Below are positions 29,801 to 60,343 of a stretch of 64,000 nt of DNA, in pieces. Positions within the stretch are counted from its first letter, which is position 1; each line of letters begins with the position of its first letter. Both the position numbers and the translations under genes were made by a program. Origin of the DNA: Haplodiscus bocki (taxonomy: Eukaryota); NCBI GenBank assembly GCA_965655095.1, contig OZ296652.1, positions 83,762,001 through 83,826,000 on the forward strand, given 5' to 3'. The notes below the pieces were generated by a model. It did not search any database. It saw only the letters and a list, made by a program, of their open reading frames with translations, and was not told the DNA's origin.

Positions 29801-32800
29801 TTTTCACCTGCTGTTGCTTGCATTGCGGCAGTAGTGATTCTACATGCGCATACCCAGCAGGGAATTCAATACTTGAGATTTTTGGTATTGGTATTGAGCA
29901 CTTTTGGTATTGGAATTGGTATTGGTATTGAGTCAATACCTGGGTTAGTGAATGGTATTGACCCAATCGTGAACTGGTATTGAAAATACGCATGTACATC
30001 AAAAATGGTCTTATCTTACCCCTAATGAAGGATTTGTGCTCTAAACAGCCAAAATAAGCATGAACATGAAAAAATGAGTAAAATCGATTTTTATTAAAAT
30101 TTTTTGCTGATTACGATAGAAATAAGCATGTGCATCAAAAAGTGACCTGTATCGATTTTTATTAAATTTTTTACTGATTACGATGGAAATAAGCATGTAC
30201 ATGAAAAATTGACTTGTATCGTTTTTAATTAAAATTTTTCAGTGATTACGATGGAAATAAGCATGTACATCAAAAATTGACTTGTATCGATTTTACTTAA
30301 AATTTTTCACCGATTACGACCAAACGAAGCGTGTATCGCCAAAATGACCTAATATGTTATTTAATCGAAATTTTACGCTGAATATGAAGAAAATATCTTT
30401 TGTTCAGAATTTTTTGGTGAATGTAACGCAAATGCTTAGAGCTTCAAACTTCCCACTGCTGAAAAGATATTTATGCTTAAACATTCAATTAGAGAATCTT
30501 TTCATTTTTCTTCAAGAAAACGTTTCTGGCGTGATGTGCAGCAGTCATACGACATTGTAAATAATTCTTAGAATATCTACACAATGAAAATAGGCGTTCT
30601 GGGTCAACACTGGCGGGTTTAAATGTAATCATATAGGCTTCAACTCTAAAGTCATCTGCACATATTCGACGTTCAAAATCAGCTAATGTTATTTCTGTCC
30701 CAAGATTGTAACCATGATCGTTTTGAGCGTTCTCTTCGTATATAAATTTCTCCTTTACCTTGTCGAAGAAACTTCCACGCTTCTTCAGAAGAGCTTCAAC
30801 GATATCATTTCTATTTAGCCATTTATCCAAGACTAACTGAGCATCAATTGACAAATTTCTTACCCGTGCTTGAAGATATAAAATTATGTTTTTAGCCGTA
30901 TGAACAGATGCATCCTTTGCTTGTAGCCGCATTGTGCATTCCTTAAAGGGCAGAAGGAGCTCAATAATATTATCTAATGCTGCCCAGTCGTAGTTTCGCA
31001 AATCATTTTCAAACATAATTTGCATATATCGTTTAAGATCTCGAAAGCGAACCAACATGTCAAATACTGAATTCCATCTCGTCGCATTACTGCAAATAAT
31101 CTTTAATGGTGATTTTCTGACAACCTCTCCGTCTGTTTGTTCATCATTCTGACTATTTAAAAATTCCAGCTGTGCTTTTTCAAGGGCTTCGGCGTTTTTT
31201 GTTGAACTATGTACCTTCTTGCAAAGGTTCCGAACAATCTCAATGACATGGCGAAATTGGCCTACAGCAACTTCACGCTCCTGATCTTGATCTTCATCGT
31301 CTTCATCATTTTCGTCAAAAATTAAATCCGATTCTGGGTTTGCGCAAATAATTCTTTTAACACATAAATTAACTACATGCGCCAAACAAGGAAATGAATA
31401 CCAACCAAATAACTCAGAAACGGCCTGTACGTCAGCTCCACAATCAGTAACCGAAATTGTTATGTCACTAGGGGTAAGGCCAAAAAGTGCTAATTGTTTC
31501 CGAAGATAGGTTGCAATTTCTTCCGCTCCACAGAAGTGTTTATAAGGAATTAAACCAAGACAAATGTCGTGCAAATCAACGTATAAATATACACCAATAA
31601 ACTTCTTCCCATCCTGTGAGGTCCACTTGTCAAACGTAATTGTTAAAAGCTGTTCCTTGTTTCGCGACTCAATAATTGATTTCAATTTTGAAACAATGCA
31701 ATGATATTTCTCATCTAATGCTTTGTTCATAGAGTGATAAGTAACGCTTCCAAATCCTAATTCACGAAACATACTTTGTAAAGCTTCGCTTTTGGCAACA
31801 GCTGTAATAGGAATGTTGTCCTTATACACAAGCTTAGAAACAGTGTCCATTCCTTTAGGCAAATTAAGCTTGGGACATTTTTTAAAACCAATCTTGGGCT
31901 GATTTGTAGGTGCTTTCCGCTTATTGGATTTTGCACAGGAATCCGCATGTTTTGAAAGACCACTTGTTCCGAAATTCGGGGCCTTGACCAAAGCATCACA
32001 TTTAATGCATTTTCGCCACTCAGTCTGTACATCGTCCTTAAATTCCAGCAAAAATAACTTGCACACATTGCTTGAAGTCTTCTTATTGACTCTATATTCA
32101 ACGACTGGAAGTTTTGGATTTTCAATTACCGTAATTTCATCAGAAATCGATTGAACGCTAGTACTGGAACTCATCAAAACTCATCTAAAACGCAAAAAAT
32201 ATTAATTTTCCAAAGTAGAATTTGGTTTTAAAATCAAGCAAAATAAAATAAAATCTAAAAATATTTTTTATTTTCGTAAAATCAGCTTCGAAAATTTGTA
32301 ATGCGGAGTTTGAAAAATTCAAATTCAATACCACTTTTGTGGTATTGAGCCCTCTGGTATTGGTATTGAGGGGTCTAGGTATTGGTATTGGTATTGAGGG
32401 TCAAAATTTTGATAGTATTGGTATTGGTATTGGTATTGAGGGCCCAAGTATTGACTTTTGGTATTGGTATTGGTATTGGTATTGCAATCCCTGATACCCA
32501 GTGTCCAACTCTCCCGCACTCCAGACATTTGCTGTTTCTAGCGGGACATTTTCGGCCTTTTTGTTCCCCGGGGCTAGAGTAAATGCATCGACTTATTGTT
32601 GCCTTGTCGGTTGTTTTTTTGACCTTCCTTCAACTGCAACAACTGACTCACTCGGACGGTCTGCGAGCGTTTGTCAATTTGTGGTGAAGGATCGGCTTAC
32701 GTCGGCTGACAACTAGTTGCTCTGGCTGGGGTAATGCATTTTTCCAGGGGAGCTTCAGCGTCTGAAAACTCGAGTAGCCTAGCCCCGATGTTGTCCAACT

Positions 32801-35800
32801 TGATTCCAGCTAAAAATCAATCTCGGAGGAAAACATTTTCATGTAATTGAATTGCCGTTGGGCTTTCGCATCGCTCAACTATTAATCGCAGTTATTTGCA
32901 ACTGCGCATTATTGTCTTCACTTTGTTGAGCCGAAACACTTGATGTCATGGATAAATAACTGACGGCTTCTCAATCTTTGCGGCCAAGAGCAATTGCCTC
33001 ATTGAGTGTTGTTGCCCGTGCAAGTATAGTGAATAGTTCAGATCTTGCGTATAGTTGAGGTAATGTCATTTCATGGGCATGCTCCGTGACTTCATTGATC
33101 GCTAATCCATCGGTAAAAGATGGCTTTCACGAAGTCCATTGTTCTTGACGAGTTTGACGGCAAGTCCGGAGGTTGGAATTTCATTTCAATTCGTTGAATA
33201 AAATTGTGTTTGTAAGGCATTAGTTACTTTGAGGCGTTCATTCAACGTTTATCTGGAACACAACTATCAGATTAGAGTATGAATATACGTGAAAGGTATA
33301 AAGCAATGAACTTAAATAAACTTGATAGATATCAATGAAATACTTGAAAATTCAGTTGTAATTTTTTTCCACTTAACCATAATCCTGCTTAGAAACTGCC
33401 TAATGAATTGTGTGGCAGTTTTCACCAAAGCATATTTGGAACAAATAAAGTTGTGCCAAATTGCCTAACTTGGTTCCTTCATGAAGTTAATTGTTTTTCT
33501 GCTGATTTAAAACGCCTTCAGTTGTCTTTGTTATTGCGATTTGAAGTTAGCCACCAATAATGTTCCAGGCTTGAAGAAAAGTCACCTTGTTAAAATCTCT
33601 ATTTTTTGTCTGTAAAGTCAGACGTCCGCCGAAGTTTGGAATATACGTTTTGAGGGAATTGGGAGAACATTTTTTGTTTGTAATTATTTGGCTTTATCAA
33701 TAATCATTTCTAATTTGACTTCTGCAGTCAATTGCCTCTCCGGCTTGAGCTTTCAAGTTCTATTTTCAATGTTTCCAGAGTTCCGTTTAAATATGGAAGT
33801 GAAGTTGAAAATTACGAGTTGTGGAATTTGAATTTCCAACAAGATGCCCGGCGAAATCCGGGATCTTTTTCCTTCCCAAGTTTGGCAAAAAACAAACAAA
33901 ATTGTTCAAATTTACAAAACCAAACTTCGGTGTCGCGATACTGTAAAGTTGCGAAATATGTTCGAAAATTGCCTCGAAACTTAACATTACGTTTTTTTAA
34001 TCAACTAATTTTTGGCACGAATCATGTTTTTGGCAAAAAACTCAATAAAGCACTGTACGGCACATTTGGAACAATTTGGTGGAAGAGAAGATAGCCTGCA
34101 GTTTTTTTGCTGATCGTGCAATTGGCGTTTTCTTGAAGAAAATAAGCTGAATGTTTAATTAATTATTTTGATACGAAATGTGTGCAAGGAACCTGAAAAT
34201 GGTGTTTATAGAACATTATTTCGATTGTAGCCAACAATCTGTGCTTTTAATAACCTGAGATCCTTTCAAGTATAACTTTTGGAATCCTTTTTCATTTTTC
34301 GAGGCTTTTAAACTTTAACAGCTTTAACTAACGAAGAAAGACTGTATCACCATTTGTTCAACGAGCAAGATTATTCAAAGTGGACTAGACCTGTGAAGAG
34401 ACAACAGCATAAAGTTGAGGTGAATCTCACTCTAGAGATGCTGCAAATAGTTCTTTTGGATGAGAAGGAAGAGTACATGAAAGCAAGTGTGTGGCCAACT
34501 CACTCCTGGTTTGACTCTTATTTGAAGTGGAAGCCCGAGCAGTTTGAAAACATTACAATTATCAGGGTCCCTCGAGGTCGAGCATGGAACCCCGATATTG
34601 TTCTCCTGAACAAGTGAGTAGCAAAGCAACTACAAATGAATAAAGAAAAAAACGATCAACTTTTTTTACTCATGCGTTAGAGCATCATCAATCTAAAAAC
34701 TAAAAAAATATATGAAGCATATGAACATATCGAATTTGTCTATAAGAAATGCAATTACAAATGTTTCGTGGATCCGAAACACATTCAAATATTGCATGAT
34801 GTACTTTTAGCATTGATGGAAAATTTGAAGTTTCTTACGAATGCAATTTACTTTTGAGCTGGGACGGTCGCATACAATGGATGCCTCCTTCAATTTACCA
34901 CAGCTCATGCTTAATGGACGTTCTTTATTTCCCTTACGATGTACAAAAATGCCCCATGAAGTTTGTTTCTGTGACTTACGATGAGTCTCAGTTAGATGTT
35001 AGTAACTTGGATTAGTGGTCCGGATTAGAAAATCTTCGGTAATGTTCATTTGTGCATTTATGTTCAGATAAAATGCGAAACAAATGTAATTTTCGATCCG
35101 TTTGCCTTCTCGCCTTCTGCTGAATGGCAAGTAATGTCATCTCCGTGTGTGTGCGACAAGTCTTCGATGCCTGGAACTGATCTATATCACTCAGCCATGG
35201 TTTGTGAATTCAGACTACGCCGCTTGTCGCTATATTACACTATCAATTTTGTTGTTCCTATCGTGATACTCACATTTTTGGCTATTCTTGGATTCTATCT
35301 ACCTTCGGAAACGAATGAGAAGATACCTCTGTGTACATCCATACTTCTGTCTGTAACTATGTTGCTTCTAATAGTGGTGAAGAATTTTGTACCTCCCACC
35401 AGTCTCGCTTTGCCTCTGATTTGCCAATACTTGCTGTTCAGGTAAATTGTTCACTTTTAAATATTTACGTACGAAAAACGTGTGCAGAACTATTTAATTT
35501 GAAAAATTCATGGAATTTGCTTGTTTGCGTTTTTATGCTCTTTGGCTTCGGATTTCAAATCCCGACTTCATGATCTTTCGAGCTAGCTGTAAAGTTGGTG
35601 TTTTACATGTTAGAATTTGATGTGTTTAATAAGTGTTTATCAAAGAAAGCCCTACTAAAACTGGTTTTTTGTTCAATATCACCGCAAACGCCCGTAAGGA
35701 ACTACGGAATAACCTTCCGTGAACAAAAACGCGTCCCTTTTTGGTAACTCATGTTTTTCTCAGGCAGTGTGGAACGTATGAAATGCATTATTGTCCAAGT

Positions 35801-38800
35801 TAACCCAGTGAATTTCATACGGCAAAATATAGTTATGGCCCCTATATTAAATCCATTTATTTCGAAAAGCAACATTTGTCAAAAAGTTCACCTCTAAAGA
35901 TGTAACTGAGGCAAAACTTGACTGGTAAAGAACTCATCCAAAACAGTAAAATTTTGAAAATCTCAAACAGTCACCCTTCAAAATTCTGCACTTTAACTTC
36001 GACAGTCCAACGCGAACAACAAACATTTTGGGTTTTTTACCGAGAAAAAAAACCAAAATTTTATTTTTTTCTCTTCCTCAAAATTTTCAAAAATCTTTGA
36101 AAATCATTTTCAATCATGGTTTTCCTGAAATCTGGCAATATATATAGAAAAGTTTACGCGGGTGGATATTCGGGTTTTGTTTACAATGTCCAGTTAGGAT
36201 GGTCCAGATTTTGCTCCATGTTCAAAAAATTATGGTCCAAACTTTGACACAAATGAAGACGCTGCCGATTTTAGTTTCCGAATTTCTGAAGTGCGTCTTC
36301 CGTTTATTGAAATTTTCTTTGGGGGTTTCGTTCCATTTTCGGTTAATTATGATCCAAATTCTGCAACACTTGCATATGATTTCGATTTCACGCAATTTTC
36401 GAAACAAATTTTGTTTTCAACTTTAAACTGAATTCTTTCTCTTCCTTGCATAGTCACATCTTTTCGAATACAATTTTTTCAAATGCCATTTTTAGAACCA
36501 TGCGGTTAATTTTCAGCTCGAAGTAAAGAAAACCTATAAATTTTTCACAATGTCCTTTCTCAAAATGCTCTTCTGGAGATTTGAATGCAGTTTTGACAAC
36601 CCTGTCGAAATTTTCACCTAAAGTCAATTTTCGTTGCTTCCTATGATTTTTCGATAGTTTTGTCTTCGTTAGAAAATTGAAAAGTGCGCTATTTTCGGTC
36701 AATTTCTTCAAAGATGTCATAGTATAGGTCGTTTATTTCCACATCTACGGCTCCAAATTACCTGAATTTTGGACAGGGTGAAGGAGGAGACTTCGATATC
36801 TCACACACTATATTTTTGTTGCGGTGCGACACTTTTTTATGTTTTCGCTGCGGAAGAAACTTTACTGTCGAGCTAATTTGTTGAGTTTCGATATGAGACT
36901 TGTCATATTTTAAATCATTATTTTCCTCATTTCGGTCTCCAAATGGCCTGAATTTTAAACAGACTTAATGAGAAGACTCTGTTTCATCAGACACTAAGTT
37001 TTGGTTGTCGTCCGACATCTTGCCGATGTTTTTTCTGTGAATGGAACTTGAAAATTGATCTAGTTTTGTCGGCCTGGATGCGAGATTTGTCATATTACAA
37101 GTCATTAGGTTCCCCATGCGGGGCTCTGCATTGCCTGATTTTTTGACAGCTTAACGAAAAGATTCTCTTTTATCACATCCAAGATTTTGATTGCAGTCCG
37201 ACAATTTTTCGATGTGTTTCTGTGCGAAAGAAACTTGATAATCGACCTTCTTTGATTTATTCGAAGTTTTCTGTGAGCTTCAAATCCTTTAGTTTGACAC
37301 CTAGAGCTTCAATTTACTGTAAATTTCGAAAAATTTTCAAATAAAATCTCGAATCTATCAGATACTTAATTTTAGCTGAGGTTGCGAAGTTTCGAAATGT
37401 TTTTTTTCCTGCTAACAGCTCTTAAATTGATTTTTTCCATATTTTCCGTCAATTTTTGATATTTGTATTGGAAGCAAGTGCAATTACGAGAATTTTTTTT
37501 CGTTTGCCTTGGCATACAAAAAGTAACAATTTTTTAATCTTTTTCGTTTTCGTTGCTGAGAAATTTTTTTCGTTTGGCCTTTTGAATGAAAAAGTCCTCA
37601 AAATCGAGATTGTTTTGGTGTTCGGGAGGTATTTGTTAATTTGAAATCATTCTCTTGGATCTTAGATCTTCAAATTCCTTGCAGCTTCCTTAGCTTTACT
37701 GAAACAGTCCCATTTTTGAGATATTAGCTTTCGGTTTCGGTGTCAATGTTTCTCGATACGTGTGCTCTGCGAAAAAGTTATCAAATTAGTTTTTCTGAAC
37801 TCATTTTGTCAGTTGGGGTTTTATTTTTTGGTAGTAATTCCATAAAGGACCCACATTTTGCACAGGATTGAAGGAAGAGATTAGTCGATTGTCTTTTACC
37901 GTTTGGGTGCGCTGACAGAATACAGAACTTTTCTTTGGGTTTTTTTAAGCAAGAGAAATTTCAAAATCGAACTATATTCATCACTTTTGATTTTTTTTAT
38001 CATCGATTTTGTCGCTATAACTTGGACGATGAGCTTTAAAATGGTCCAGATTCTCACTTGGAATAACAAGAGGCCTTCAGTTTTTATCTTTTAGGTGTTG
38101 GTTCAGGTCAGACATACTTTTTGCTTTGATTTCCGGGGATAGAACGTGATAATCGAAGATGTAATGATATTTTGAACTTTCTCTCAAATTTTATTCTTTC
38201 AGGGCAGATACTTCTGAGAACTGGCAATATCCTAAGTTATTGCAACAAAGACGACACATTTTTATGCCAAATGATTTTGGGTCAGTAGTTTTTCGATATA
38301 TTTTTACGAGACCAACTTCCAGATCGGGATTTAATGGCCAATGGAAAGTTTTGTGATCTTTTTGTCCTATATCTCTCTTAGTGGAAGCGAGGACTAAAAT
38401 GGAGGCTGATTTGGCATTGGAAAGAGAAAGACGCTCCGTTTATTTTGCAAACCATGTTTCAGATGCAGTCAGTTTTTTTTGATAGGTGTTCTCCGAAAAC
38501 GATTAACGTCGATCGATTTTGAATTCATTTTGAAAGCTTAGTCAAGTTCAAATCCGTTTAGCTCCGAGGTCTCATTAACAAAGTGATGGCGCCATTTCGT
38601 TTTTTGGGAAGATCTTGGAGCTAGCCTAGCACTGAGCCGTCAATGCGTATGTATGATTCCTGTTCGTGACCTGCGAAAAATGTTAATCATCAGTAATTAC
38701 ATCTACACCTTGGAACGCATGTTTCCTTAACTGCGAACTTGAATTCTTCCATCAAGGGCTCAATCGACACCTCTCTACTTGAAGAGGACTATTCAATGGA

Positions 38801-41800
38801 GAAGTGATAGATTTTGGTCTTCGCGTTGGTATCGTGGTAGTCCGAAAATGCCAAAAGTGTAATAATTTTGGCATATCCCTTTTTTCAAATTCTCATTTCT
38901 CTATAAGTTTTTGTTTCACTTCTTCCATCAAGTGTTCACTGGACAGCTCTTAATCTGTAAGAGGGTCTTCGATTTGGAATTGCTTGATTTTCTCAATCAA
39001 CAAGCTTTTCATGACAGGCTGAAAATGCCGAGAAGCGCAATTGTTCATGTGATTTTGTCGATATTCAAATTCATAGACTTCTGAAGCTTTTTGCGATACG
39101 ACACTGCTTGAGCAATTGTATTAAACTATGCCGTAAACTAAATATAGTAGAAAAAAGAATTAAATTTTGAGACAGGAATATAAGGGCTTGAATTCTTCGA
39201 CAAGGTCTCAATGAAAAACCACTCGTAGTTTCGATGAATCATATGTACACCTCCTTGATCCAGAATACCAATGTGCAACCGCGCCTCTTCTGACTGCTTT
39301 TGTGCAACATTCCAAGATTTTTGGTTCAATCTGTGCCGCAGAAGATTGTGATGACGACCGCAGAAGATTATGATGACGATTTGGCAAGTTTCCAATTTTT
39401 TGCTGACCTGATCTACCCACTTTGTTTTCTCTCAATCGACAGATTTTTAAATGTAACTTCTTTGAACTGCAAGATTTCTTGAAGATTATGTTCCGATTTC
39501 TAATTTGGATGTTCAAACTATTGCTGCAAATGCATAGGATGTCGATTTTAGTCAATTTTCCGCGCGCTTCTGAAACTGATAAATCAATTGTCTTCATTTA
39601 CGCTATAACCAACCGCTTTTCAAATATGAAATCCTGTGAGTCCAAAATTGCATGCGAGCTTTTTTTCCACTTTAGGAAAATTATGGTCCAAATATTGCTA
39701 CACTCGCGTATAATATGATTTTTAGTCAATTTTGCTGGTGCTTTTTCTACACTTCCAACCCAATTCTTTTCATCTCTATCTCATTTACACCTTTTTCTTT
39801 ATAATTTTTTCTTTGGAGCGATTTTTTGAGATTTTCTCTACAAATGTTTCAATTGATGTATGGTTTTCTCAAACAATTCTACCCATGCATTCGATGTCTT
39901 TTTTCTTTTTCCAAGTGCTTTTTCATTTAAACTAATCACCCAATTCTTTTTGTCCGAGGCTTAATCCGAAGCCTATTACATAGATTGATATGCTTGGACT
40001 TCTTTCTTTTTTGTTGGAGCGATTTTGTTGAAACGGTCTGAACACTGCTACGAATGCATATGATGTTCAGTTCAGCCTTTTTTACTTGGGTTTTTTTTCT
40101 GTTGAACTACCCACGCAATTCTTTTCCATTACGACGGAATGTAAATCAAAAATACGTAAATTTCTATAACTGGAGTAGTTTTTCTATTTCAATCTCTAAA
40201 ATTGTTGTTGTAAGAATGGCTTGTCGGTTTGCCTCAATGTTCAAAATGCTTTGCTCCGTAACCGCCCATTCAATTTCTTTAATTCGGCTCCAATTAGATT
40301 TCATAGTTGTGTTCAAATTAAAACGGTTTGTTAGTTTTGAAAAAAATGGTTCAATTCGATACTTCAGCGATTTCTAACATCAGTAGAAATTTTTTAAGCA
40401 GCCATCATTTGCCTACCTCCGTTGTATGCAAACGCATTTTTGGCTATTAATTTCAGTTGTCATTTTTTTCTGACGAAATGAATACTGGGAGCAACTCATA
40501 TCGGCAACAAGATATCAGACAGTTGTCCTATTAGCCCAAAAAATAAAGAAGTAACGTTTGTTAGAATTTCGGAGTTTTTTAGGCTTTTCTGGTGTGTACA
40601 TAGGCTTTTTCGTAAGAATTAAGAATTATTTCGATTTTTTTCCAAATGCAAAGCTGCGTGTGAGTTCAAGAGTGACCATATGCGAATCGAAAAATTGAAA
40701 TAATCGAGATCATTCCAACTTTGGAAATGGTTCCTCGAAATTATTTCCGACATAATATCCGTCTTTCTTAGGTGTTTTTGTTTGGTTTTCTTTAGTCGGC
40801 GCTTTTTAGAATAATAGTGCACGACTATAACGGACTTTTTGTTCGTTAGAATCGCTGCTAAATGCCTCAGTTTTTAGTTGAGCTAAATGTTCAAAAGGAA
40901 GGCACCAAAGCAGTGCAATTGCTGGAAAGAAGGCGTATATTGGGTACATATACGAAGTAATTTCAACCCGGTAGCAACTTTTTTTTGTGTTGCCTTCCCT
41001 ACCTTTGACCAAATTCAAAGTTTTTTAAAATGATAAACCAAAAATGTTAGTGATAACCCTCTAGCTTATACCGAAAATATTCAAAATGAAAAAGTTTATT
41101 GTTACGCCCCTTTTACGCCTTTTGACTGAAAGGAAGAAAAGATTTTTTTTATTGGGAACCGAGGTATGTATAGTGTTGTTTTATCCAGTCCAAAACTTAC
41201 ATTTGTGACGTCATTAGTCTAGTCGTCTAGTTGAAACGGTCAAAAAGGACCTTTTTAAAACATTTTGGCAGGTATTCGTTTGTTTTCGTGTTCTGAAACT
41301 TGCAAATTTTTTAAATATTCGTCTGAAGAGTGAACGACAGTGTTCTAAAAGGTAATGTTTCATATAATAATGTTTTGAATATGAGAAAGTGTGTTTTTCA
41401 TGAGGTCCGGTGCTTTTATTAGGTGAAGCTGTTGTAAATTGAATGATTGGGTGCTTCATCTACAGAATTCTTACTCGAAGATCTAGTTTTTATAACTGCC
41501 TTCGGTGCAACTATTTTTGCACATTCTGACTGAAAGGAATGCATAGTTTTTTATTCAGTCCAAAACTTACATTTTGTGACCTTATTAGTCTAGTCATCTA
41601 ATTTAAACGGTCAAAAAGGAGCCTTTTTGAAACATCTTGGCAGGTACTAGTTTATTTTCGCCTTCTGAAAAATGCAAAATTTTTAAAGATTAGTTTGAAA
41701 AACGAACAACAGCGTTCTAAAAGGTAATGTTTCACAAAATAATGTTTTGGATATGAGACTGTGTGGGAAGTGCATTAGGTGTCTCAGAAAAACGTTAAAT

Positions 41801-44800
41801 GTAAAAGTTTCGACTTGTCAAACTTTGAAGTGGTTAATATTAGTAAACAAGACCTCGGAATTTTTCTAGTCGGCACATACAGGCTTTCAGTTATCAAAAC
41901 TGACACATGCGCTGAATCTCATTGTGAGAATTTAGGTTCAGATTATGAAAGTTGTGTACTTTTATTTGACTGAAATTAGGCAACTGTCTTTCTGATATTT
42001 CAATTAAGTTATACACCCATATGCACCTACCAAAGGACCAGAAACAATTTTTTGTGAAGCTCCCACCCCTAGCATATTCCGAGCCTTGCGGGCAGCGGAG
42101 ATTAACCAAATTTAATCGTACTTGACAATAACTAAACCTCGTCATCTGTTGAGGTTTAGGTCTTAGACCATTTCTGGGTTTTTTAAATGGTGGGGTTTCT
42201 GGACGAGAAGTGATAATGACGAGGAACCTCATTGCATCATAGTGATTGATGTTCAATACAGTAGGGTTTTAAAAGAATGGAGCTCCTATGCATAAATTGA
42301 CCAACTTAAGACATCATTATCTCTGAAACTATTTGAAATCGTTACTTTTGGTAGGAAGAAAAGTTTCTTAGATTTTTATCTAGTTTACATTCGTTTTTGT
42401 TCCAAAATTTTACGACCAATACAGCAAAAGTTAGAAATGGTCATTTTTGGACAAAATTAATAAAATTTCGTGTATTTTTGATCTTTAAAGCCCTCAATGA
42501 AATTTTTTTTCGACACAATTTGTACGTAAATGTTCACCTAAAGGTTGTGAAACCATTAATATCTTTCGTTTTCAAAAATTTTTCAATTTGCGCATAAAAT
42601 GGCTGTGTTTATACAACGAACTTTTTGGTTACATGTTTTAAGATAGGTTTTACGATTTGTATTTCGAAAATTTGCGAATTCTATTTATATTCAAAGTATT
42701 TCGGCAATCAAAATATATCACAGGATTCTAGAAATTCCGGGGAATTTTTATGGTACATAATTTTTCGAAAAAGTTTTTTCAAACTTGGTCAAACTTCAAA
42801 AAAACGACAGAGATAACCAAAATTGGCAAATATTAACCAATGAGATTGCGAATTGAGAGCAAATGAGATCCTATTGGCTGAGAAGCGTCAGCGAACGCTC
42901 TTTAGCTCCATTCCTTTAAAACACCACTGTACTTCGTTATTTTGTTCAGCATGATCATGGTCTCATTCAGTATAATTGCAACAGTTGTGGTTCTGAATTT
43001 CCATCACAAGCCACCTCTCTCGACAGTGATGCCAAAGTGGGCCTACAGGTTTTTCGTGAAAACTCTCCCAAAGTGGCTTGCAATTGGTTCTCATCCTCAC
43101 TTGCCCCATTCAACTTCTGCTTCTGAACGGCTTGCTAGTGCTGCCAAGAAAAATGACCTTGTTATCTCCAATTTCGTGCATTTACGTGACACGCGAAGTT
43201 TTTGTTACGGTGAGTCCGTTACCCCAAAAGTTTTGGCTGTCGTCCAAGTTATAAACATGGTCGCCTCGCCTTTTATTGAATCCAGTCATTCATCGTTTTA
43301 TTGTGCATCTATACTTCATGAATCATTGCGAGAAGGAAGTTCGAGTAATGTGAAGTGAAATTGAGGTTCATGATAAAACGATGAAATAGGCGAGTTACTT
43401 GAATCATGTTTGCCATGGTTTTTTCCTGGGTCTTTTCCGCATCTTCACCCCTCGAATTGCGGTGAGTTGAGTCATAGCTTTCTGAATTAACAATTTGAAT
43501 GAGTTATTTCTACTTTACAATGGTGTGAGTCACTCATGAGAATTACTATAACCAATTTGACCTTTTTGGCATAACTCATAGCACAAAAAATAATCGGGAA
43601 TAGTATAAAAGTCAGTTTTAGGCCTTAAGCTTATAAACTTAATGCCTATAGATATTATTTTATCCCTTTTTTTCTTCGCCCTCTTTTCACTCATTTTCGC
43701 AAGTCAATTCGAAACTGCCCTGCTGAGCGATGAAGTGAAATAAGCAGAAAAAAATTAAATCGCTTGACTTTATGGCTTTTTACATCACGATTCACTCTTT
43801 GTTTTCAAGTACTTGTTGTAATTGATTCAAGTTTTCTCAACTTAGTCATTTTAATTAGCATCCTATTTTCCGCTCTTTTTATTATTAGCAGTCAATTTTT
43901 TGATAGTTTCGCTCAATTAGGTAGTTTTACTATGCTGAGTTCTAGGATCCTTGATGCGTATGTTTTGCCAATGTAAATATTTTGGGGGAAATATTCGTTT
44001 CGCAGAAAAAGGGAAGATTCTGAAAAGACCCTCTTTTTTCTTCTTAAGTTTCTTTAGCTTTTTCACAATGAAATGCATAAGTCAATTTAGAAGACTACTT
44101 GGGAAAATGTCACCGCATTCCGAATATTTTAATTTTTGACAATTCACTAAAAACGTATACTGAGTGTGGGCTGTGATTTTGAAGAAAAGCTACTTTGGTC
44201 GGGTTTTTCAGCGCCGACTGAAAACTGGAGTAAACCCTTCCTGTTAAATGAAATTTCCTTCACAAAATATTCATCACCTGTTGGCTTCACTTACCTATTT
44301 TTTCGCGGTGGCGTTAAGTTGAAAAGGGATTGCTAGGAGCTGCATTTGTCTGATTATGCTAAAATTGGAACAAATTAGCTACAGCAAGACTTATATGTTT
44401 TCAAGATTACAATAGCTATTGTTAGACAAAAATCGTTTGAGTCTTCTGAAGTTTGATTCGAAATAATCTTCAGATTAATGGTTCAATAGAAATTCACATG
44501 TTTTAACAAACGTGCATTCAATTCAATTGATATCACTATTTCAAAACCCCAAAATGCTTATCTTATTTTTGTCAAACGAAATTTTATTCTTCAGAAAATG
44601 CTAATTTATGCTGAAATTTCTCTCACTTCTGCAAAATATGAGAAGCTGAGCTCCAAAAGTCTCCATTTTAGCTTAAGCGACGCTTTTTGAAGAAATTGTG
44701 GAACGTGCCATAAATATAATACATCATCGTTGGAATAAGGTTTCACACAGAAGCTGATAAAATAGTTTAACCATAATTATATCTCTGTTGCGGATTGAAC

Positions 44801-45715
44801 AATCAACGTAATTTTAGTCCCAACAGGCACAAGCGCTACCCATCTGCTGAGTTGTTGTGAAAAGCTGATGAATGAAAACGTGTTTCAAAATGATTACCCG
44901 AACCCAGCTGATGAATCAATGTTGCAGCAAATGTTGCATGAGCTTCAAATTCAGCCATCCGATCTGAGAGAAGGTGCCGATGCTGTGACCTATATAAGTG
45001 CTCGCTACATAAAGAATGATCTGTACAAAAAGGTTGGACTTCTTGCTCATTCGAACTTTCCAAAATTGCTGTTTACTTAAAAGTCAGCTTGAAAAAGTCT
45101 TGAGGTGGCTCATAAAAAACGAACAGTTATACAACGTTGCTCACATAATTTAGCTATGCTAACACTATGGCAATCATGCTCATATGGTCTTTTGGTACCT
45201 ATTGTTAAAAAAGAGTCTCCAATATTTTTTGTAAAATAATAATGATAAAATTCAAAATTGAACAATGCTTGATTATAAAACGTGGCCAAATGCAATCCGG
45301 CAATGGGAGGAGACGGCAACATAATCATAACTTCTTCGTCTATGCATAACAAAATGCCTCTTCATAGCAAAAGAACATTGTTCCTGGCTCAAGGGTGCTT
45401 TTTTCATTAAAACAGCAAGGAAAATAGAATGCGACACGGTTTTTGTTGGTCATGATTTTGACGTTGCAATTTCGAGGTTTTTATTTCTCAAGTAAGTATT
45501 AATTTGTGGCAATTTTTGTTCAGATTAGAGACGAGTGGCATTTATTGGCAAAAGTGGTAGATCGGATTCTGTTGGTGATTTATACCAGTGTTATTGTGGT
45601 TGGGTCTCTGCTCATCTTCTTCCAAGTTCCAAGCTTGCGATCTGATTCTCTCAACTACATGCAAAACTCCTTTTCGTCTGTCCCTCAAAAAGTCAAATCT
45701 ACCTTTACCTCCTGA
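5789..45715 (+). CDS. Cys-loop ligand-gated cation channel, nicotinic acetylcholine receptor-like non-alpha subunit; join(5789..5852,34322..34613,34811..34997,35068..35441,42950..43209,44818..45032,45524..45715), 527 aa
   Basis: Manual splicing: all introns GT-AG, phases (1,2,0,2,1,0) match, total 1584 nt. Motifs: EERLYHHLF..RPV, WNPDIVLLNN, Cys-loop CLMDVLYFPYDVQKC, M1 YYTINFVVP..FYLP, NEK-M2, PPTS, M3, MPKW, MA helix, EW..AKVVDR-M4. No vicinal CC in loop C. Exon 1 link is inferred. Confidence 0.9.
7150..9490 (+). mobile_element. HINE/DINE-1-like non-autonomous Helentron with a degenerate ~175-bp internal tandem array
   Basis: Motif GGCTTGA(A)TT..GGTCTCAATCG..TCAAACTCAT recurs near 7320, 7480, 7655, 7830, 8010, 8190, 8620, 9160, 9340; ends in hairpin CGCAGT-GCG-ACTGCG then CTTGTT (9465-9488). 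5' boundary uncertain. Confidence 0.6.
10720..10951 (+). repeat. Truncated copy of the ~175-bp-array HINE-like family
   Basis: TTCAAACTCA..ACCGGCTTGATTT..TCTCAATCG, then CAGTGCCGCTGCGCATCTTGTT end motif. Confidence 0.55.
12220..13247 (+). repeat. Copy of the ~175-bp-array HINE-like family
   Basis: Units near 12330, 12505, 12690, 12850; end motif CAGTAGACAAAAAGTATCGCAGAGCCGC..TCTTGTT. Confidence 0.55.
14194..15029 (-). mobile_element. Solo-LTR-like unit (836 bp) containing a gag-N-terminus-like reading frame (14599..14194, one internal stop)
   Basis: TGTG...CACA termini; frame MATLRNKRELAAVSSETPE...YIS*VSEEIEGRV...LPKLDEFLL...EETHH runs to the terminal CACA; no TSD found. Confidence 0.6.
15030..15454 (-). 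repeat. Second LTR-like/promoter-bearing repeat next to the solo LTR
   Basis: TGTTCCGTATG start on -; CRE palindrome GTGACGTCAC (15405-15414) between two CCAAT boxes; TAGCACTG/CAGTGCTA hairpin at 15291-15313. Confidence 0.4.
19530..21950 (+). mobile_element. Heavily decayed Ty1/Copia-like remnant
   Basis: Scattered motifs in Copia order: ESAESTVNYLTR (gag), knuckle-like relics ~20000-20100, ALIDTG (20165), ETART (21130), RNxLDP-like (21455), NFIGI (21900). No LTRs found. Confidence 0.4.
25480..26480 (+). mobile_element. Decayed non-LTR (LINE) RT remnant
   Basis: DPIILANRF, SGHFP, PVLSR..KRLL and GVPQGSVLGP/ADD-like relics across frames. Confidence 0.3.
26730..26852 (-). repeat. 3' LTR of the Gypsy element
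   Basis: TG...CA termini on -, preceded by a polypurine tract (26853-26860). Confidence 0.82.
28750..29205 (-). pseudogene. Gypsy reverse transcriptase fragment
   Basis: RT motifs recognisable; catalytic YLDD reads YLAD; flanked by frameshifts. Confidence 0.85.
29984..30390. repeat. ~68-bp tandem repeat (5-6 units) inside the hAT, downstream of the transposase
   Basis: Units start AAATAAGCATG(T)ACAT(C/G)AAAAA at ~30052, 30120, 30187, 30255; degenerate units at 29984 and 30322. Confidence 0.9.
30489..32174 (-). CDS. hAT transposase, 561 aa from the ATG at 32174
   Basis: BED finger (CIKC..GTSGLSKHADSC), catalytic TFDKWTS and VTDCGAD, CxxH (CLAH), TRWNS, C-terminal PASVDPERLFS carrying the catalytic E; no stops or introns. 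Confidence 0.95.
   Translation of the reverse strand: MSSSTSVQSISDEITVIENPKLPVVEYRVNKKTSSNVCKLFLLEFKDDVQTEWRKCIKCDALVKAPNFGTSGLSKHADSCAKSNKRKAPTNQPKIGFKKCPKLNLPKGMDTVSKLVYKDNIPITAVAKSEALQSMFRELGFGSVTYHSMNKALDEKYHCIVSKLKSIIESRNKEQLLTITFDKWTSQDGKKFIGVYLYVDLHDICLGLIPYKHFCGAEEIATYLRKQLALFGLTPSDITISVTDCGADVQAVSELFGWYSFPCLAHVVNLCVKRIICANPESDLIFDENDEDDEDQDQEREVAVGQFRHVIEIVRNLCKKVHSSTKNAEALEKAQLEFLNSQNDEQTDGEVVRKSPLKIICSNATRWNSVFDMLVRFRDLKRYMQIMFENDLRNYDWAALDNIIELLLPFKECTMRLQAKDASVHTAKNIILYLQARVRNLSIDAQLVLDKWLNRNDIVEALLKKRGSFFDKVKEKFIYEENAQNDHGYNLGTEITLADFERRICADDFRVEAYMITFKPASVDPERLFSLCRYSKNYLQCRMTAAHHARNVFLKKNEKIL
32341..32483. repeat. hAT subterminal (GGTATT)n clusters; matching clusters at 29884-29980
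   Basis: Blocks of 1, 2, 3, 4, 1 and 4 hexamers separated by short spacers. Confidence 0.9.
33205..33327 (-). repeat. 5' LTR of the Gypsy element
   Basis: Ungapped manual alignment to 26730..26852: 94/123 identical; ends ..CACA on -, followed by a gag-like reading frame. Confidence 0.8.
34322..34613 (+). CDS. nAChR-like exon 2 (N-terminal helix, loop D, loop A)
   Basis: tttaacAG acceptor; LTNEERLYHHLFNEQDYSKWTRPV...VWPTHSW...LKWKP...WNPDIVLLN; GTGAGT donor at 34614. Confidence 0.92.
34811..34997 (+). CDS. nAChR-like exon 3 (loop E, Cys-loop, loop B); not in the ORF track
   Basis: cttttAG acceptor; IDGKFEVSYECNLLLSWDGRIQWMPPSIYHSSCLMDVLYFPYDVQKCPMKFVSVTYDESQLD; GTTAGT donor at 34998. Confidence 0.93.
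35068..35441 (+). CDS. nAChR-like exon 4 (loops F/C, M1, M2, start of M3)
   Basis: gttcAG acceptor; AEWQ...RRLSLYYTINFVVP...[55 protein letters not shown] donor at 35442. Confidence 0.93.
36740..37420. repeat. Degenerate ~186-bp tandem array (at least 4 units, weaker units to ~38500)
   Basis: CTCCAAAT..CCTGAATTTT..ACAG..GAGAC..TTTTG.TTG..G.CCGACA recurs near 36745, 36930, 37115, 37300. Confidence 0.65.
38700..39290 (+). repeat. Copy of the ~175-bp-array family in nAChR intron 4
   Basis: CTTGAATTCTTCCATCAAGGGCTCAATCG at ~38738; GGCTTGAATTCTTCGACAAGGTCTCAATG at ~39185. Confidence 0.55.
41120..41765 (+). repeat. Tandem pair of a ~240-280-bp interspersed repeat; third copy at ~56585..56847
   Basis: CAGTCCAAAACTTACATTT..TTAGTCTAGTC..AAACGGTCAAAA..TGGCAGGTA..TTCTAAAAGGTAATGTTTCA in both copies; homologous blocks at 56.6-56.8 kb. 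Confidence 0.85.
42950..43209 (+). CDS. nAChR-like exon 5 (rest of M3, MX, intracellular loop)
   Basis: ttttgttcAG acceptor; MIMVSFSIIATVVVLNFHHKP...MPKWAYRFFVKTLPKWL; GTGAGT donor at 43210. Confidence 0.88.
44818..45032 (+). CDS. nAChR-like exon 6 (intracellular loop, MA helix)
   Basis: In-phase acceptor AG at 44817 (alternative at 44826); LREGADAVTYISARYIKNDLYKK resembles the MA helix; GT donor at 45033. Confidence 0.78.
45524..45715 (+). CDS. nAChR-like exon 7 (M4, C-terminus)
   Basis: tttttgttcAG acceptor; IRDEWHLLAKVVDRILLVIYTSVIVVGSLLIFFQVP; TGA stop. Confidence 0.9.
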   Translation: MRDEWHLLAKVVDRILLVIYTSVIVVGSLLIFFQVPSLRSDSLNYMQNSFSSVPQKVKSTFTS

Positions 45716-55004: not shown

Positions 55005-55895
55005 ATGGATTCAACTTTGAAGGGTGACATTTACTGCATTCTGAATGGAGTTTGTTTCCTGATGGCTGCTGCGTTCACAAGACACTCACATGTTGCAAAC
55101 CCGGAGCATTTTTTGTTCGCAAGAGTTCTCGCTTTTCTAGTCGGAGGTTTAATTTACTGCGTCTCCTCTAATGAGCTCGGGAAACTATTCACAGATCACA
55201 AGTTACTTGGGTTCACATGTTTGAATGGGTTTTTCACAGTGAACATGAACTTGACATACCTCTTAACTTTGAACCACTTGGCTACCAGCGATGCCTACGT
55301 CATCAATAGACTGCGAATTGTTGTTACCGGAATCTTGAGCGCGATACTATGCGACGATCCTTTTGGCATTTACAGCATATTCTGCACTTTTCTAATATTG
55401 TCCGGAGCTGTGCTAATTGCTGAGCCGGCTGCCCTTTATTCTTCAGCTGAGCGCAGTTACAATATTTCATACTCAGGTTACGTAATCATCTTTGCTGCTG
55501 TGTTTTTCGGTGGGGCCAACTCAGTGACGCTAAAATTAGCTCATAAAAATGACTGTTACGTGACGTCATCACAATTTATACTCTCATTTGGGGTGATGGG
55601 ATTGCTGCAATACGTGCTGTCGGGGTACATACCCGAAGATGTGTGCGAAATGTTTCTGACCGATTGGTTCACCTTGTCACTTCATGTGATTATTAGTGTG
55701 GGCACTCTTATGTTCTTCAAAAGATGTCTTGACTATATATCAGCTCAAAGATTTGCGATTGTGTCTTGTATCATCATTCCTATTTCCTACATCATCGATG
55801 CCCTCTTCATCTCTTTCACGATACGCCTGACCTCAATGATTGGAGCTGCTTTCGTCTTCGTGGGTGTGTACCTCTATGCTTCTCCGAACAAATAA
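55005..55895 (+). CDS. EamA/drug-metabolite transporter superfamily protein (SLC35G-like), 296 aa, intronless
   Basis: About 10 hydrophobic segments in two halves; LATSDAYVI..VVTGILSAILCDDP resembles the EamA/SLC35G motif; C-terminal ISYIIDALF..TSMIGAAFVFVGV. Confidence 0.8.
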   Translation: MDSTLKGDIYCILNGVCFLMAAAFTRHSHVANPEHFLFARVLAFLVGGLIYCVSSNELGKLFTDHKLLGFTCLNGFFTVNMNLTYLLTLNHLATSDAYVINRLRIVVTGILSAILCDDPFGIYSIFCTFLILSGAVLIAEPAALYSSAERSYNISYSGYVIIFAAVFFGGANSVTLKLAHKNDCYVTSSQFILSFGVMGLLQYVLSGYIPEDVCEMFLTDWFTLSLHVIISVGTLMFFKRCLDYISAQRFAIVSCIIIPISYIIDALFISFTIRLTSMIGAAFVFVGVYLYASPNK

Positions 55896-58870: not shown

Positions 58871-59440
58871 CGTCGGATACCCATTTGAGCGGAAGATTTT
58901 GCTTCCATATTTTATGATATGGCGCAAAATAAAAAAGCAGTGTAAAAGTTTTATTTGTTTTCAGTTTCGTAATTCAACTTAATCATTGGCAAAATCTTTA
59001 ATTGAGTCCAAGTGGAAATTGTAAATTCTTCACATTGAAATTTTGAAATGCGAAGTGATTGATTCGTGCCTGAACTCCTGAACAAAATCCTGAATAATGA
59101 ATTGCTCATCAGATGGCAGAGTGGAGAAGTCAAGATCTTAAATAACATTCATTATTACTTACACCAGGTTGATAGGATTACGTGAATACTCCGTTGAAAT
59201 TGACCGTGGGCGTTCAATAAATTGACCATTTTAAATTTTGTAAGCGTTAAGTATGAAACTCTTTGTTTTCGTTCATTTTAGCGGCAACTTGGTCAATTTG
59301 CATTATTTTGCGAAAATTTGTATAGTTTTTATAATTGGAAAAACGATCATGGTACGTTAAATTGGTCAACATTCATCGGAAACATTTTCAGAAAACGATC
59401 TGAAACTGTCAAATTATCTCCCGATACTACTCCACGCGGG

Positions 59441-60343
59441 ATGGCGGCTGGCGGAACTTCCCTTGAAATACCTTTAGATAATCTACAGTGTCAAGTTTGT
59501 TCCTGCAATGTAGTCGATCCCCGAAACCTTCCGTGTGGGCATTGGTTTTGTGGACCATTCAGAAGTTGTCTCACGAGTATGATAAGGGACAATGGAAACG
59601 TGGAATGCATTGCATGCAAACAAATCTTTCGCAACCTTGACATTAATGCTCTTGAAGTTAACGAGAGGGTTCTTAGCAAATTACATTTTGAGAACTTGAC
59701 AACTAAGTTGAATAGTATCATTTTAGATGGCTATTCGTGCAACGAACATATTACTAGCATCCTTTCTTATTTCTGTGAAAATTGCTCTGTGAAGCTTTGC
59801 AATATCTGTTGGCATAAACACAACGGTTCGCACAAGGTCATTCATATTAATGAGAAAAGGAAGCAGCTCTTGGTAGCATTATTGGAGACAGTTCAAAGAA
59901 AACGACAGTTGGAAAAGTATCAGAAGTTGACGAATAATGTGGAAAATTTGAAGAATTCTTTAGAGGAAGTTTCTGGGTTTTGTGAAAAATTCAGTGAAGA
60001 CGTGAATGCGAGCGTGGCCGCGTTGCAGAATTGCGAAAAGCAATTCCACACTTTGACAGCTAAGTCATCGAATATGGATGCAAAGCATATGAAAGAATTT
60101 TTCAATGACATTTCGGGCCACGTTGAGAGATCGAGCAACCAGACTGTGAGGTCGAGTTTGGCTGATTTAAAGGAAAACAGCCGCCTAAAAATGGGAGAAG
60201 TGTTGGACGAAATGAAGCATATGGATGCTCATGATCGGAAAAATCAGCCTCATAGCATTCACGGTTTGAAAACCTGCTTTCTGAATTTGAAGCATTGTAT
60301 TTCAAACGATAGAATTCACTCATACCATTATTTTAGGGAATGA
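59441..60343 (+). CDS. TRIM/RBCC-type E3 ligase (RING-HC, B-box2, coiled coil), 300 aa, intronless
   Basis: CQVC-x11-CGHWFC-x5-C-x12-CIAC RING; CNEH..YFCENCSVKLCNICWHKHNGSH B-box; heptad-rich helix follows. First ATG of the ORF is at 59441. Confidence 0.88.
   Translation: MAAGGTSLEIPLDNLQCQVCSCNVVDPRNLPCGHWFCGPFRSCLTSMIRDNGNVECIACKQIFRNLDINALEVNERVLSKLHFENLTTKLNSIILDGYSCNEHITSILSYFCENCSVKLCNICWHKHNGSHKVIHINEKRKQLLVALLETVQRKRQLEKYQKLTNNVENLKNSLEEVSGFCEKFSEDVNASVAALQNCEKQFHTLTAKSSNMDAKHMKEFFNDISGHVERSSNQTVRSSLADLKENSRLKMGEVLDEMKHMDAHDRKNQPHSIHGLKTCFLNLKHCISNDRIHSYHYFRE

Follow-up and report, generated by a model that had tools for sequence, protein, structure and literature searches.

A single-copy acoel gene for a divergent, probably non-alpha subunit of the nicotinic acetylcholine receptor family with conserved additional cysteines

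Can a nicotinic acetylcholine receptor (nAChR) subunit that has lost the aromatic residues of its acetylcholine (ACh) site still be a partner in an ordinary receptor, or does it serve a different ligand? This question is raised by a locus of Haplodiscus bocki, located in a stretch of 64,000 nucleotides (nt) on contig OZ296652.1 (assembly GCA_965655095.1, positions 83,762,001 to 83,826,000 of the forward strand; this whole stretch is referred to as the window, and coordinates are counted from its first letter). At 34322-35240, an original prediction made from the letters had placed a divergent nAChR-like subunit, for which it proposed either a structural non-alpha role or a lineage-specific receptor for a ligand other than ACh. 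The first of these alternatives was the better supported in our analysis: the gene probably encodes a lineage-specific non-alpha subunit of a heteromeric, cation-selective nAChR, in which it would hold a complementary or structural position.

The predicted segment belongs to a seven-exon Cys-loop receptor gene on the + strand at 32583-45715. The exons for the extracellular domain (ECD) lie in 34322-35240, of which the 5' edge is a splice acceptor and the 3' edge is the pre-M1 segment. The predicted product comprises 531 amino acids (aa), or 528 aa if an acceptor 9 nt downstream, at 44827, is used, and not the 527 aa of the original prediction. The spliced 531-aa model was used for alignments and trees. 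In searches and fold prediction the window gene was searched exon by exon, with the acoel orthologs P0151 and P0157 standing in for the full-length protein. Exons 2 and 3 matched the Pfam family Neur_chan_LBD (E = 1.2e-23 and E = 2.8e-19, respectively) and exon 4 matched Neur_chan_memb (E = 2.3e-14), all above the gathering scores.

After removal of the introns, the binding loops read as originally described, with a Leu in loop A, Val-Ser-Val in loop B, no YxCC in loop C, and a retained Trp in loop D. The loop A motif PDIVLLN|N straddles the exon junction 34613/34811 and carries Leu121 (34606-34608) at the usual Tyr site. In the loop B motif KFVSVTYD, Val-Ser-Val (34965-34973) replaces Gly-Ser-Trp, with Val177 (34971-34973) at the Trp site. 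Loop C, SPCVCDKSSMPGTDLYHSAMVC, does not contain the vicinal Cys-Cys of alpha subunits (SPCVCDKSSMPGTDLYH at the site where the acoel alpha subunit P0165 has YSSCC). In place of the principal aromatic box, the window protein has Leu121, Val177 and a Ser/Lys region; near TyrC2 alone an aromatic residue is left (Tyr225/His226), so that three of the four aromatic positions of the principal face are gone. With Leu for TyrA, Val for TrpB, and no vicinal Cys, the principal (+) face is, as judged from its residues, unable to form an ACh site. The residues of the complementary face are kept (W83, L137, Q145, and M147), and those of loop E align with the corresponding positions of alpha7 and beta2. Loop D reads ASVW, with the Trp (W83) encoded at 34492-34494; this position is occupied by Tyr in the acoel Convolutriloba macropyga. 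The Cys-loop at 34908-34952 has the form C-x13-C (C156-LMDVLYFPYDVQK-C170; cysteine codons 34908-34910 and 34950-34952) and contains the FP(F/Y)D core. All gating-coupling elements appear intact, namely this core (FPYD), the RR before M1, the Leu at 9', and the Pro-Pro between M2 and M3.

Orthologs were found in acoels only. An exhaustive search of 1.84 billion representative sequences with exon 4 yielded 3504 relatives, of which a single one was below E = 1e-30 (P0001, 86% identity); the next had ≤50% identity. P0001 comes from Symsagittifera roscoffensis and has a full-length isoform, P0151; their NCBI names are "alpha-3-like" and "beta-4-like", respectively. A word search with P0151 retrieved the C. 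macropyga ortholog (P0154/P0157), and a word search with exon 4 retrieved a fourth ortholog, a fragment from an assembly in ENA (P0184/L003). S. roscoffensis and C. macropyga both belong to the acoel family Convolutidae, and the NCBI pipeline had already annotated their orthologs as nAChR subunits ("beta-4-like"). Judged by these searches, the orthogroup is so far restricted to acoels; as the window protein branches outside the convolutid pair, the window is assigned to a further acoel.

The coding sequences of the orthologs were rebuilt from their genomic loci. In four of four species, the three exons that encode the ECD and the first two transmembrane (TM) helices total 292, 187, and 374 nt, and only in C. 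macropyga does one extra intron (L001 7333/7748) divide the 292-nt exon into 146 + 146 nt. The span of the whole gene is 37 kb in C. macropyga, 18 kb in S. roscoffensis, and 13 kb in the window. Across the four species there is no change in M2, in the loop C tip MPGTD, in the loop A Leu, in the loop B VSV, or in any of the seven extracellular Cys. Amino-acid identity across species is 79-94% for the ECD and ~96-100% for M1-M3, and the closest relative, L003, shares ~79% exon DNA identity and 94% protein identity with the window gene. Synonymous sites are saturated in nearly every ortholog pair; for S. roscoffensis versus C. macropyga, the pair with an estimable synonymous divergence (dS), omega was 0.045 for the ECD and 0.014 for M1-M3. 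The intracellular domain has ~41% identity to the convolutid orthologs. As far as frame and substitution pattern tell, the gene is intact and strongly constrained, and not a pseudogene.

A search with the three ECD/TM exons (tblastn) detected no second copy or tandem paralog in the 64-kb window. In each acoel genome examined there was one ortholog gene, according to word-index searches of low sensitivity that returned 4, 6, and 1 proteins (for P0151, P0155, and exon 4, respectively) and do not constitute a census of acoel nAChRs. Within this scope, the gene is single-copy and not part of an expanding family. The nearest paralog found was the S. roscoffensis "acr-3-like" protein P0155 (29% identical), which has a loop A Leu, a loop B devoid of Trp (FTTLEFD), and CxxC in loop C. 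The original prediction had proposed to count paralogs that share the Cys pattern; the window contains none, and P0155 does not have the pattern. P0155 represents a second very divergent acoel non-alpha subunit, and a word search with it gave no close relatives. S. roscoffensis also encodes a canonical alpha subunit (P0165, with VLYNN, GSWTYD, and YSSCC), and therefore alpha partners are present in the acoel lineage.

The seven extracellular Cys (residues 134, 156, 170, 188, 212, 214, and 231) are those itemised in the original prediction, namely the Cys-loop pair and the additional Cys in YEC (34842-34844), IKC (35074), PCVC (35146 and 35152), and MVC (35203). Conservation of the additional Cys in orthologs had been set beforehand as one of the tests of the proposal, and its outcome is favourable to the proposal, with all five kept in the four species. 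They all fall between beta5' and beta10. Among the 141 nearest representative clusters, the first beta9 Cys is unique to the acoel clade, and the beta10 Cys occurs in 3 sequences. In the AlphaFold model of P0151, DSSP assigned beta9 to residues 209-215 and beta10 to residues 222-234, with a six-residue turn between them, and C209 (window residue 212, the first of the CxC) faces C228 (window residue 231, in beta10) in strand register. As these two residues lie opposite each other, we infer a plausible cross-strand staple between beta9 and beta10 below the short loop C, which agrees with the disulfide-clamped loop C suggested originally. A loop C disulfide that bridges beta9 and beta10 is found in the anionic branch (glycine, gamma-aminobutyric acid (GABA)-A-like, and GluCl receptors), where it flanks the loop tip, whereas the putative acoel bridge would lie ~six residue pairs below the tip. 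Of the five additional Cys, four are probably tied up in two extra disulfides, with the fifth left unpaired; since the number of Cys is odd, one of them would be free or would bridge subunits. Strand register alone assigns no partners to Cys 134, 188, and 214.

The M2 segment, NEKIPLCTSILLSV, is of the cation type and does not contain the Pro-Ala-Arg motif. Of the residues that line it, the -1' Glu (E269; 35317) is common to 140 and the 9' Leu (L279; 35347) to 111 of the 142 aligned sequences (nearest representatives). The 2' Pro (35326) is shared by only 3 of these 142, and an extra residue after the 20' Lys (35380) is confined to the acoel clade among the 141 nearest representatives. We also considered an anion channel and rejected it on account of the -1' Glu. 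The AlphaFold model of P0151 has helices at 236-259, 267-289, and 297-326 and a long C-terminal helix at M4. As the window exons align with P0151 throughout, the product has the four TM helices of the family.

Comparison with solved structures places the protein near vertebrate non-alpha subunits. The closest structures were human muscle delta for exon 2 (E = 3e-21) and beta2 for exons 3 (E = 6e-17) and 4 (E = 4.5e-24), followed by beta4 and delta. The P0151 model (pLDDT 78.8, from a 53-row alignment) shows the standard subunit fold, and its best structure matches were the beta2 chain of alpha4beta2 and muscle-type chains (E ~1e-36). The structural non-alpha alternative of the original prediction thus gained from the delta, beta2, and beta4 likeness, the kept (-) face, the cation pore, and the alpha subunit in a related acoel. 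With beta2/beta4 (CHRNB2, CHRNB4), which provided the top Foldseek match (8ssz_B) and the best matches of exons 3 and 4, the acoel protein shares the absence of vicinal Cys, the -1' Glu, the 9' Leu, the 20' Lys, the LC motif of M2, and the loop D Trp. In contrast, beta2/beta4 keep the loop A Tyr and the loop B Trp (VLYNN, RSWTYD), have Thr at 2', contain none of the five additional Cys, and reach an overall identity with the acoel protein of only ~33-35%. Muscle delta is similar in other respects: delta-like representatives also have neither the loop A Tyr nor the loop B Trp, their SYSCNV motif places a Cys at the YEC position, and their loop F starts with IIDP. Delta differs by a long loop F insertion and has no Cys in beta8, beta9, or beta10. 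Loop A of muscle beta1 is VLLNN, as in the acoel protein.

All splice junctions of the gene are GT-AG, and the frame is open through the seven exons. Exon 1 (32583..32658, +) is predicted to provide the start codon, the signal peptide MHRLIVALSVVFLTFLQLQQLTHSD, and a phase-1 donor (GTCTGC). No other ATG-to-GT candidate lying close upstream combines a signal-like hydrophobic core with the correct phase, and the first exons of the orthologs have 58-67 coding nt and the same phase. Exon 2 (34322..34613, +, 292 nt), flanked by AG and GTGAGT, encodes the N-terminal helix and beta1-beta4 together with the loop D Trp and the loop A Leu. Loop E, the YEC Cys, the Cys-loop, and the loop B VSV are located on exon 3 (34811..34997, +, 187 nt). 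Exon 4 (35068..35441, +, 374 nt) starts with the beta8 IKC Cys and continues through loop F, the beta9 CxC, the loop C tip MPGTD, the beta10 Cys, the pre-M1 RR, M1, and M2 to the start of M3. The remainder of M3 and the start of the intracellular loop are encoded by exon 5 (42950..43209, +, 260 nt), which follows an intron of 7.5 kb; its frame continues as LLF|SMIMVSFSII...NFHHK and is alignable to the orthologs. Exon 6 (44818..45032, +, 215 nt, with the alternative in-frame acceptor at 44827), defined by its frame and splice sites, contains more of the intracellular loop and the MA helix. Exon 7 (45524..45715, +) completes the MA helix and contains M4, the C-terminus, and the stop codon; its sequence, IRDEWHLLAKVVDRILLVIY..., matches the ortholog M4 in the alignment. 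The exon sequences are identical in genomic contigs from two samples; the four runs concerned are all genomic and contain no splice joints.

From the gene structure, family, residues, conservation, single copy, and alpha subunit of a related species, which were observed directly, we infer a heteromeric assembly with the following organization. The near-canonical (-) face (loop D Trp and the Leu, Gln, and Met of loop E) would join an alpha-type partner to complete an ACh site from the complementary side; alternatively, the subunit may occupy a non-binding structural position in the heteromer. M2 would line a cation pore with the -1' Glu, the 9' Leu, a 20' Lys as in beta2, and the unusual 2' Pro. 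The extra disulfides would stiffen the subunit, one of them by stapling beta9 to beta10 beneath the shortened loop C.

Several observations weigh against a non-alpha subunit of this kind. In a careful maximum-likelihood tree of 37 sequences, the three full-length orthologs formed a clade with support 100/99, in which the window protein branched outside the convolutid pair. This clade was part of a polytomy with beta2, delta, alpha2-6-type, ambulacrarian, and acoel alpha sequences, had a stem of 2.05 changes per site, and joined no named non-alpha group. A union of the clade with P0155 had high support in a quick tree, was flagged as possible long-branch attraction, and dissolved in the careful tree. 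In this phylogeny, proposed originally as a check, the grouping with ordinary non-alpha subunits was neither recovered nor rejected; placing the clade with vertebrate beta2 and delta costs 2 log-likelihood units (approximately unbiased (AU) test, p = 0.40). Furthermore, the invariant MPGTD tip and the unique belt of Cys point to a constraint on the (+) side for which a purely passive structural subunit would have no obvious need, and the 2' Pro together with the residue after 20' may cause atypical pore behaviour. The disulfide map is based on secondary-structure register, not on S-S distances, and a search of sequencing runs for the gene stretch matched no RNA run.

The loss of the whole principal aromatic box in an ECD that is yet under very strong purifying selection, down to its five unique Cys and the unchanging tip of loop C, could also denote an orphan, lineage-specific receptor outside cholinergic signalling. 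Such a receptor would be homomeric or assemble with paralogs only, and would be gated by a non-ACh ligand, by redox state, or by a metal via the odd Cys. The long stem of the clade, which precedes the acoel radiation, is consistent with this scenario, and invertebrate orphan nAChR-like receptors have been documented (PMC10338036). One example is Alpo4 of Alvinella pompejana, which has no vicinal disulfide in loop C, is phylogenetically isolated, and has no known ligand (PMC10338036). However, the aromatic cage of Alpo4 is kept (F103, W159, Y199, Y205, and W65; PMC10338036), whereas the acoel protein has lost three of the four principal positions. We consider an orphan receptor unlikely, as the gene is single-copy and the complementary face and the determinants of the cation pore are canonical. 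Vertebrate muscle non-alpha subunits, moreover, show a similar loss in loops A and B (delta-like VLENN and FSSLKY) and are nevertheless ordinary ACh-receptor subunits; the caveat of the original prediction that they also lack the loop B Trp was borne out by the delta-like rows. The analogy drawn there to cephalopod chemotactile receptors gained no positive support. These receptors are built on an nAChR scaffold that lost the ACh-binding aromatics and form a large, expanded family of contact chemosensors. Unlike such large tandem sensory expansions, the acoel gene exists in one copy, its orthologs correspond strictly one to one, and its product has a canonical (-) face. Quite unlikely, in our estimate, is the more specific proposal of an acoel-specific orphan pentameric channel, in which a rigid three-disulfide ECD, the stapled loop C, and the unpaired Cys would create a new ligand, redox, or metal site and the 2' Pro would lead to a distinctive pore.

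The rarity of the 2' Pro and the clade-specific residue after 20', as well as the ~96-100% identity of M1-M3, which may reflect a special, constrained contribution to the pore, could also be explained by a non-conducting or dominant-negative modulatory subunit. It would join nAChR subunits in the pentamer, but its 2' Pro and longer M2-M3 linker would serve mainly to regulate trafficking or lower conductance, and it would provide no binding interface. All gating-coupling elements read intact, though, and sequence by itself does not separate such a subunit from a non-alpha subunit that contributes to an ordinary heteromer; we regard the modulatory role as distinctly improbable. A pseudogene, or an artefact of assembly or annotation, might be suspected because exon 1 was predicted from the genome sequence, the 7.5-kb intron interrupts M3, and a transposon-rich stretch stops ~80 bp 5' of the proposed ATG. 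This possibility is close to negligible given the open frame in seven exons with GT-AG throughout, the identity of the two-sample genomic contigs over the exons, omega values far below 1 in all comparisons, and an exon structure that matches the NCBI-annotated orthologs.

The intron that splits M3 (35442-42949) measures 7.5 kb here, as compared with ~390 nt in L003 and, in the two convolutids, ~370-950 nt. Fragments of open reading frames (ORFs) recur within it, such as the similar peptides encoded at 41218-41352 and 41602-41724, and hint at inserted transposons. Contigs of the second sample (run X3) break into unlike sequence at 34258 (just 5' of exon 2) and 34657 (intron 2), and the exons are identical; these breaks are probably intronic structural variants between individuals. 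Upstream of the gene, the transposon-rich stretch covers 29850-32501 and has a GGTATT-rich tandem repeat of 21/42 nt at its edge (32340-32478). A 562-aa ORF on the minus strand (30489-32177) had no Pfam match at E ≤ 0.001. Downstream, an uninterrupted, apparently intronless ORF of 296 aa (55005-55895, +) contains two EamA-like transporter repeats (Pfam E = 3.8e-12), and in a 341-aa ORF (59318-60343, +) a B-box zinc finger narrowly exceeds the Pfam cut-off and a match to the TnsA C-terminal family stays below threshold.

The place of acoels among bilaterians is contested and may be an early-branching one, and a literature search on acoel nAChRs and ligand-gated channels found no paper. Of the 132 nAChRs of Crassostrea gigas, 99 are of the non-alpha type (PMC6896357), and invertebrates commonly have divergent non-alpha subunits. 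Because of this, and because the orthologs were already annotated, we count the gene as a further subunit of a known type. It is well supported that the product is a divergent but recognisable subunit and not a new receptor class; its conserved Cys pattern is noteworthy. The data indicate that a non-alpha subunit in the style of the muscle type, with a fully eroded principal face, would also exist outside the vertebrates, for which an independent or a shared origin are both possible. The belt of additional Cys is conserved and not common to any nearby family. If the disulfide map is true, the acoel subunit would provide a natural stapled loop C hairpin in the cationic branch, which may inform on loop C mobility and subunit assembly.

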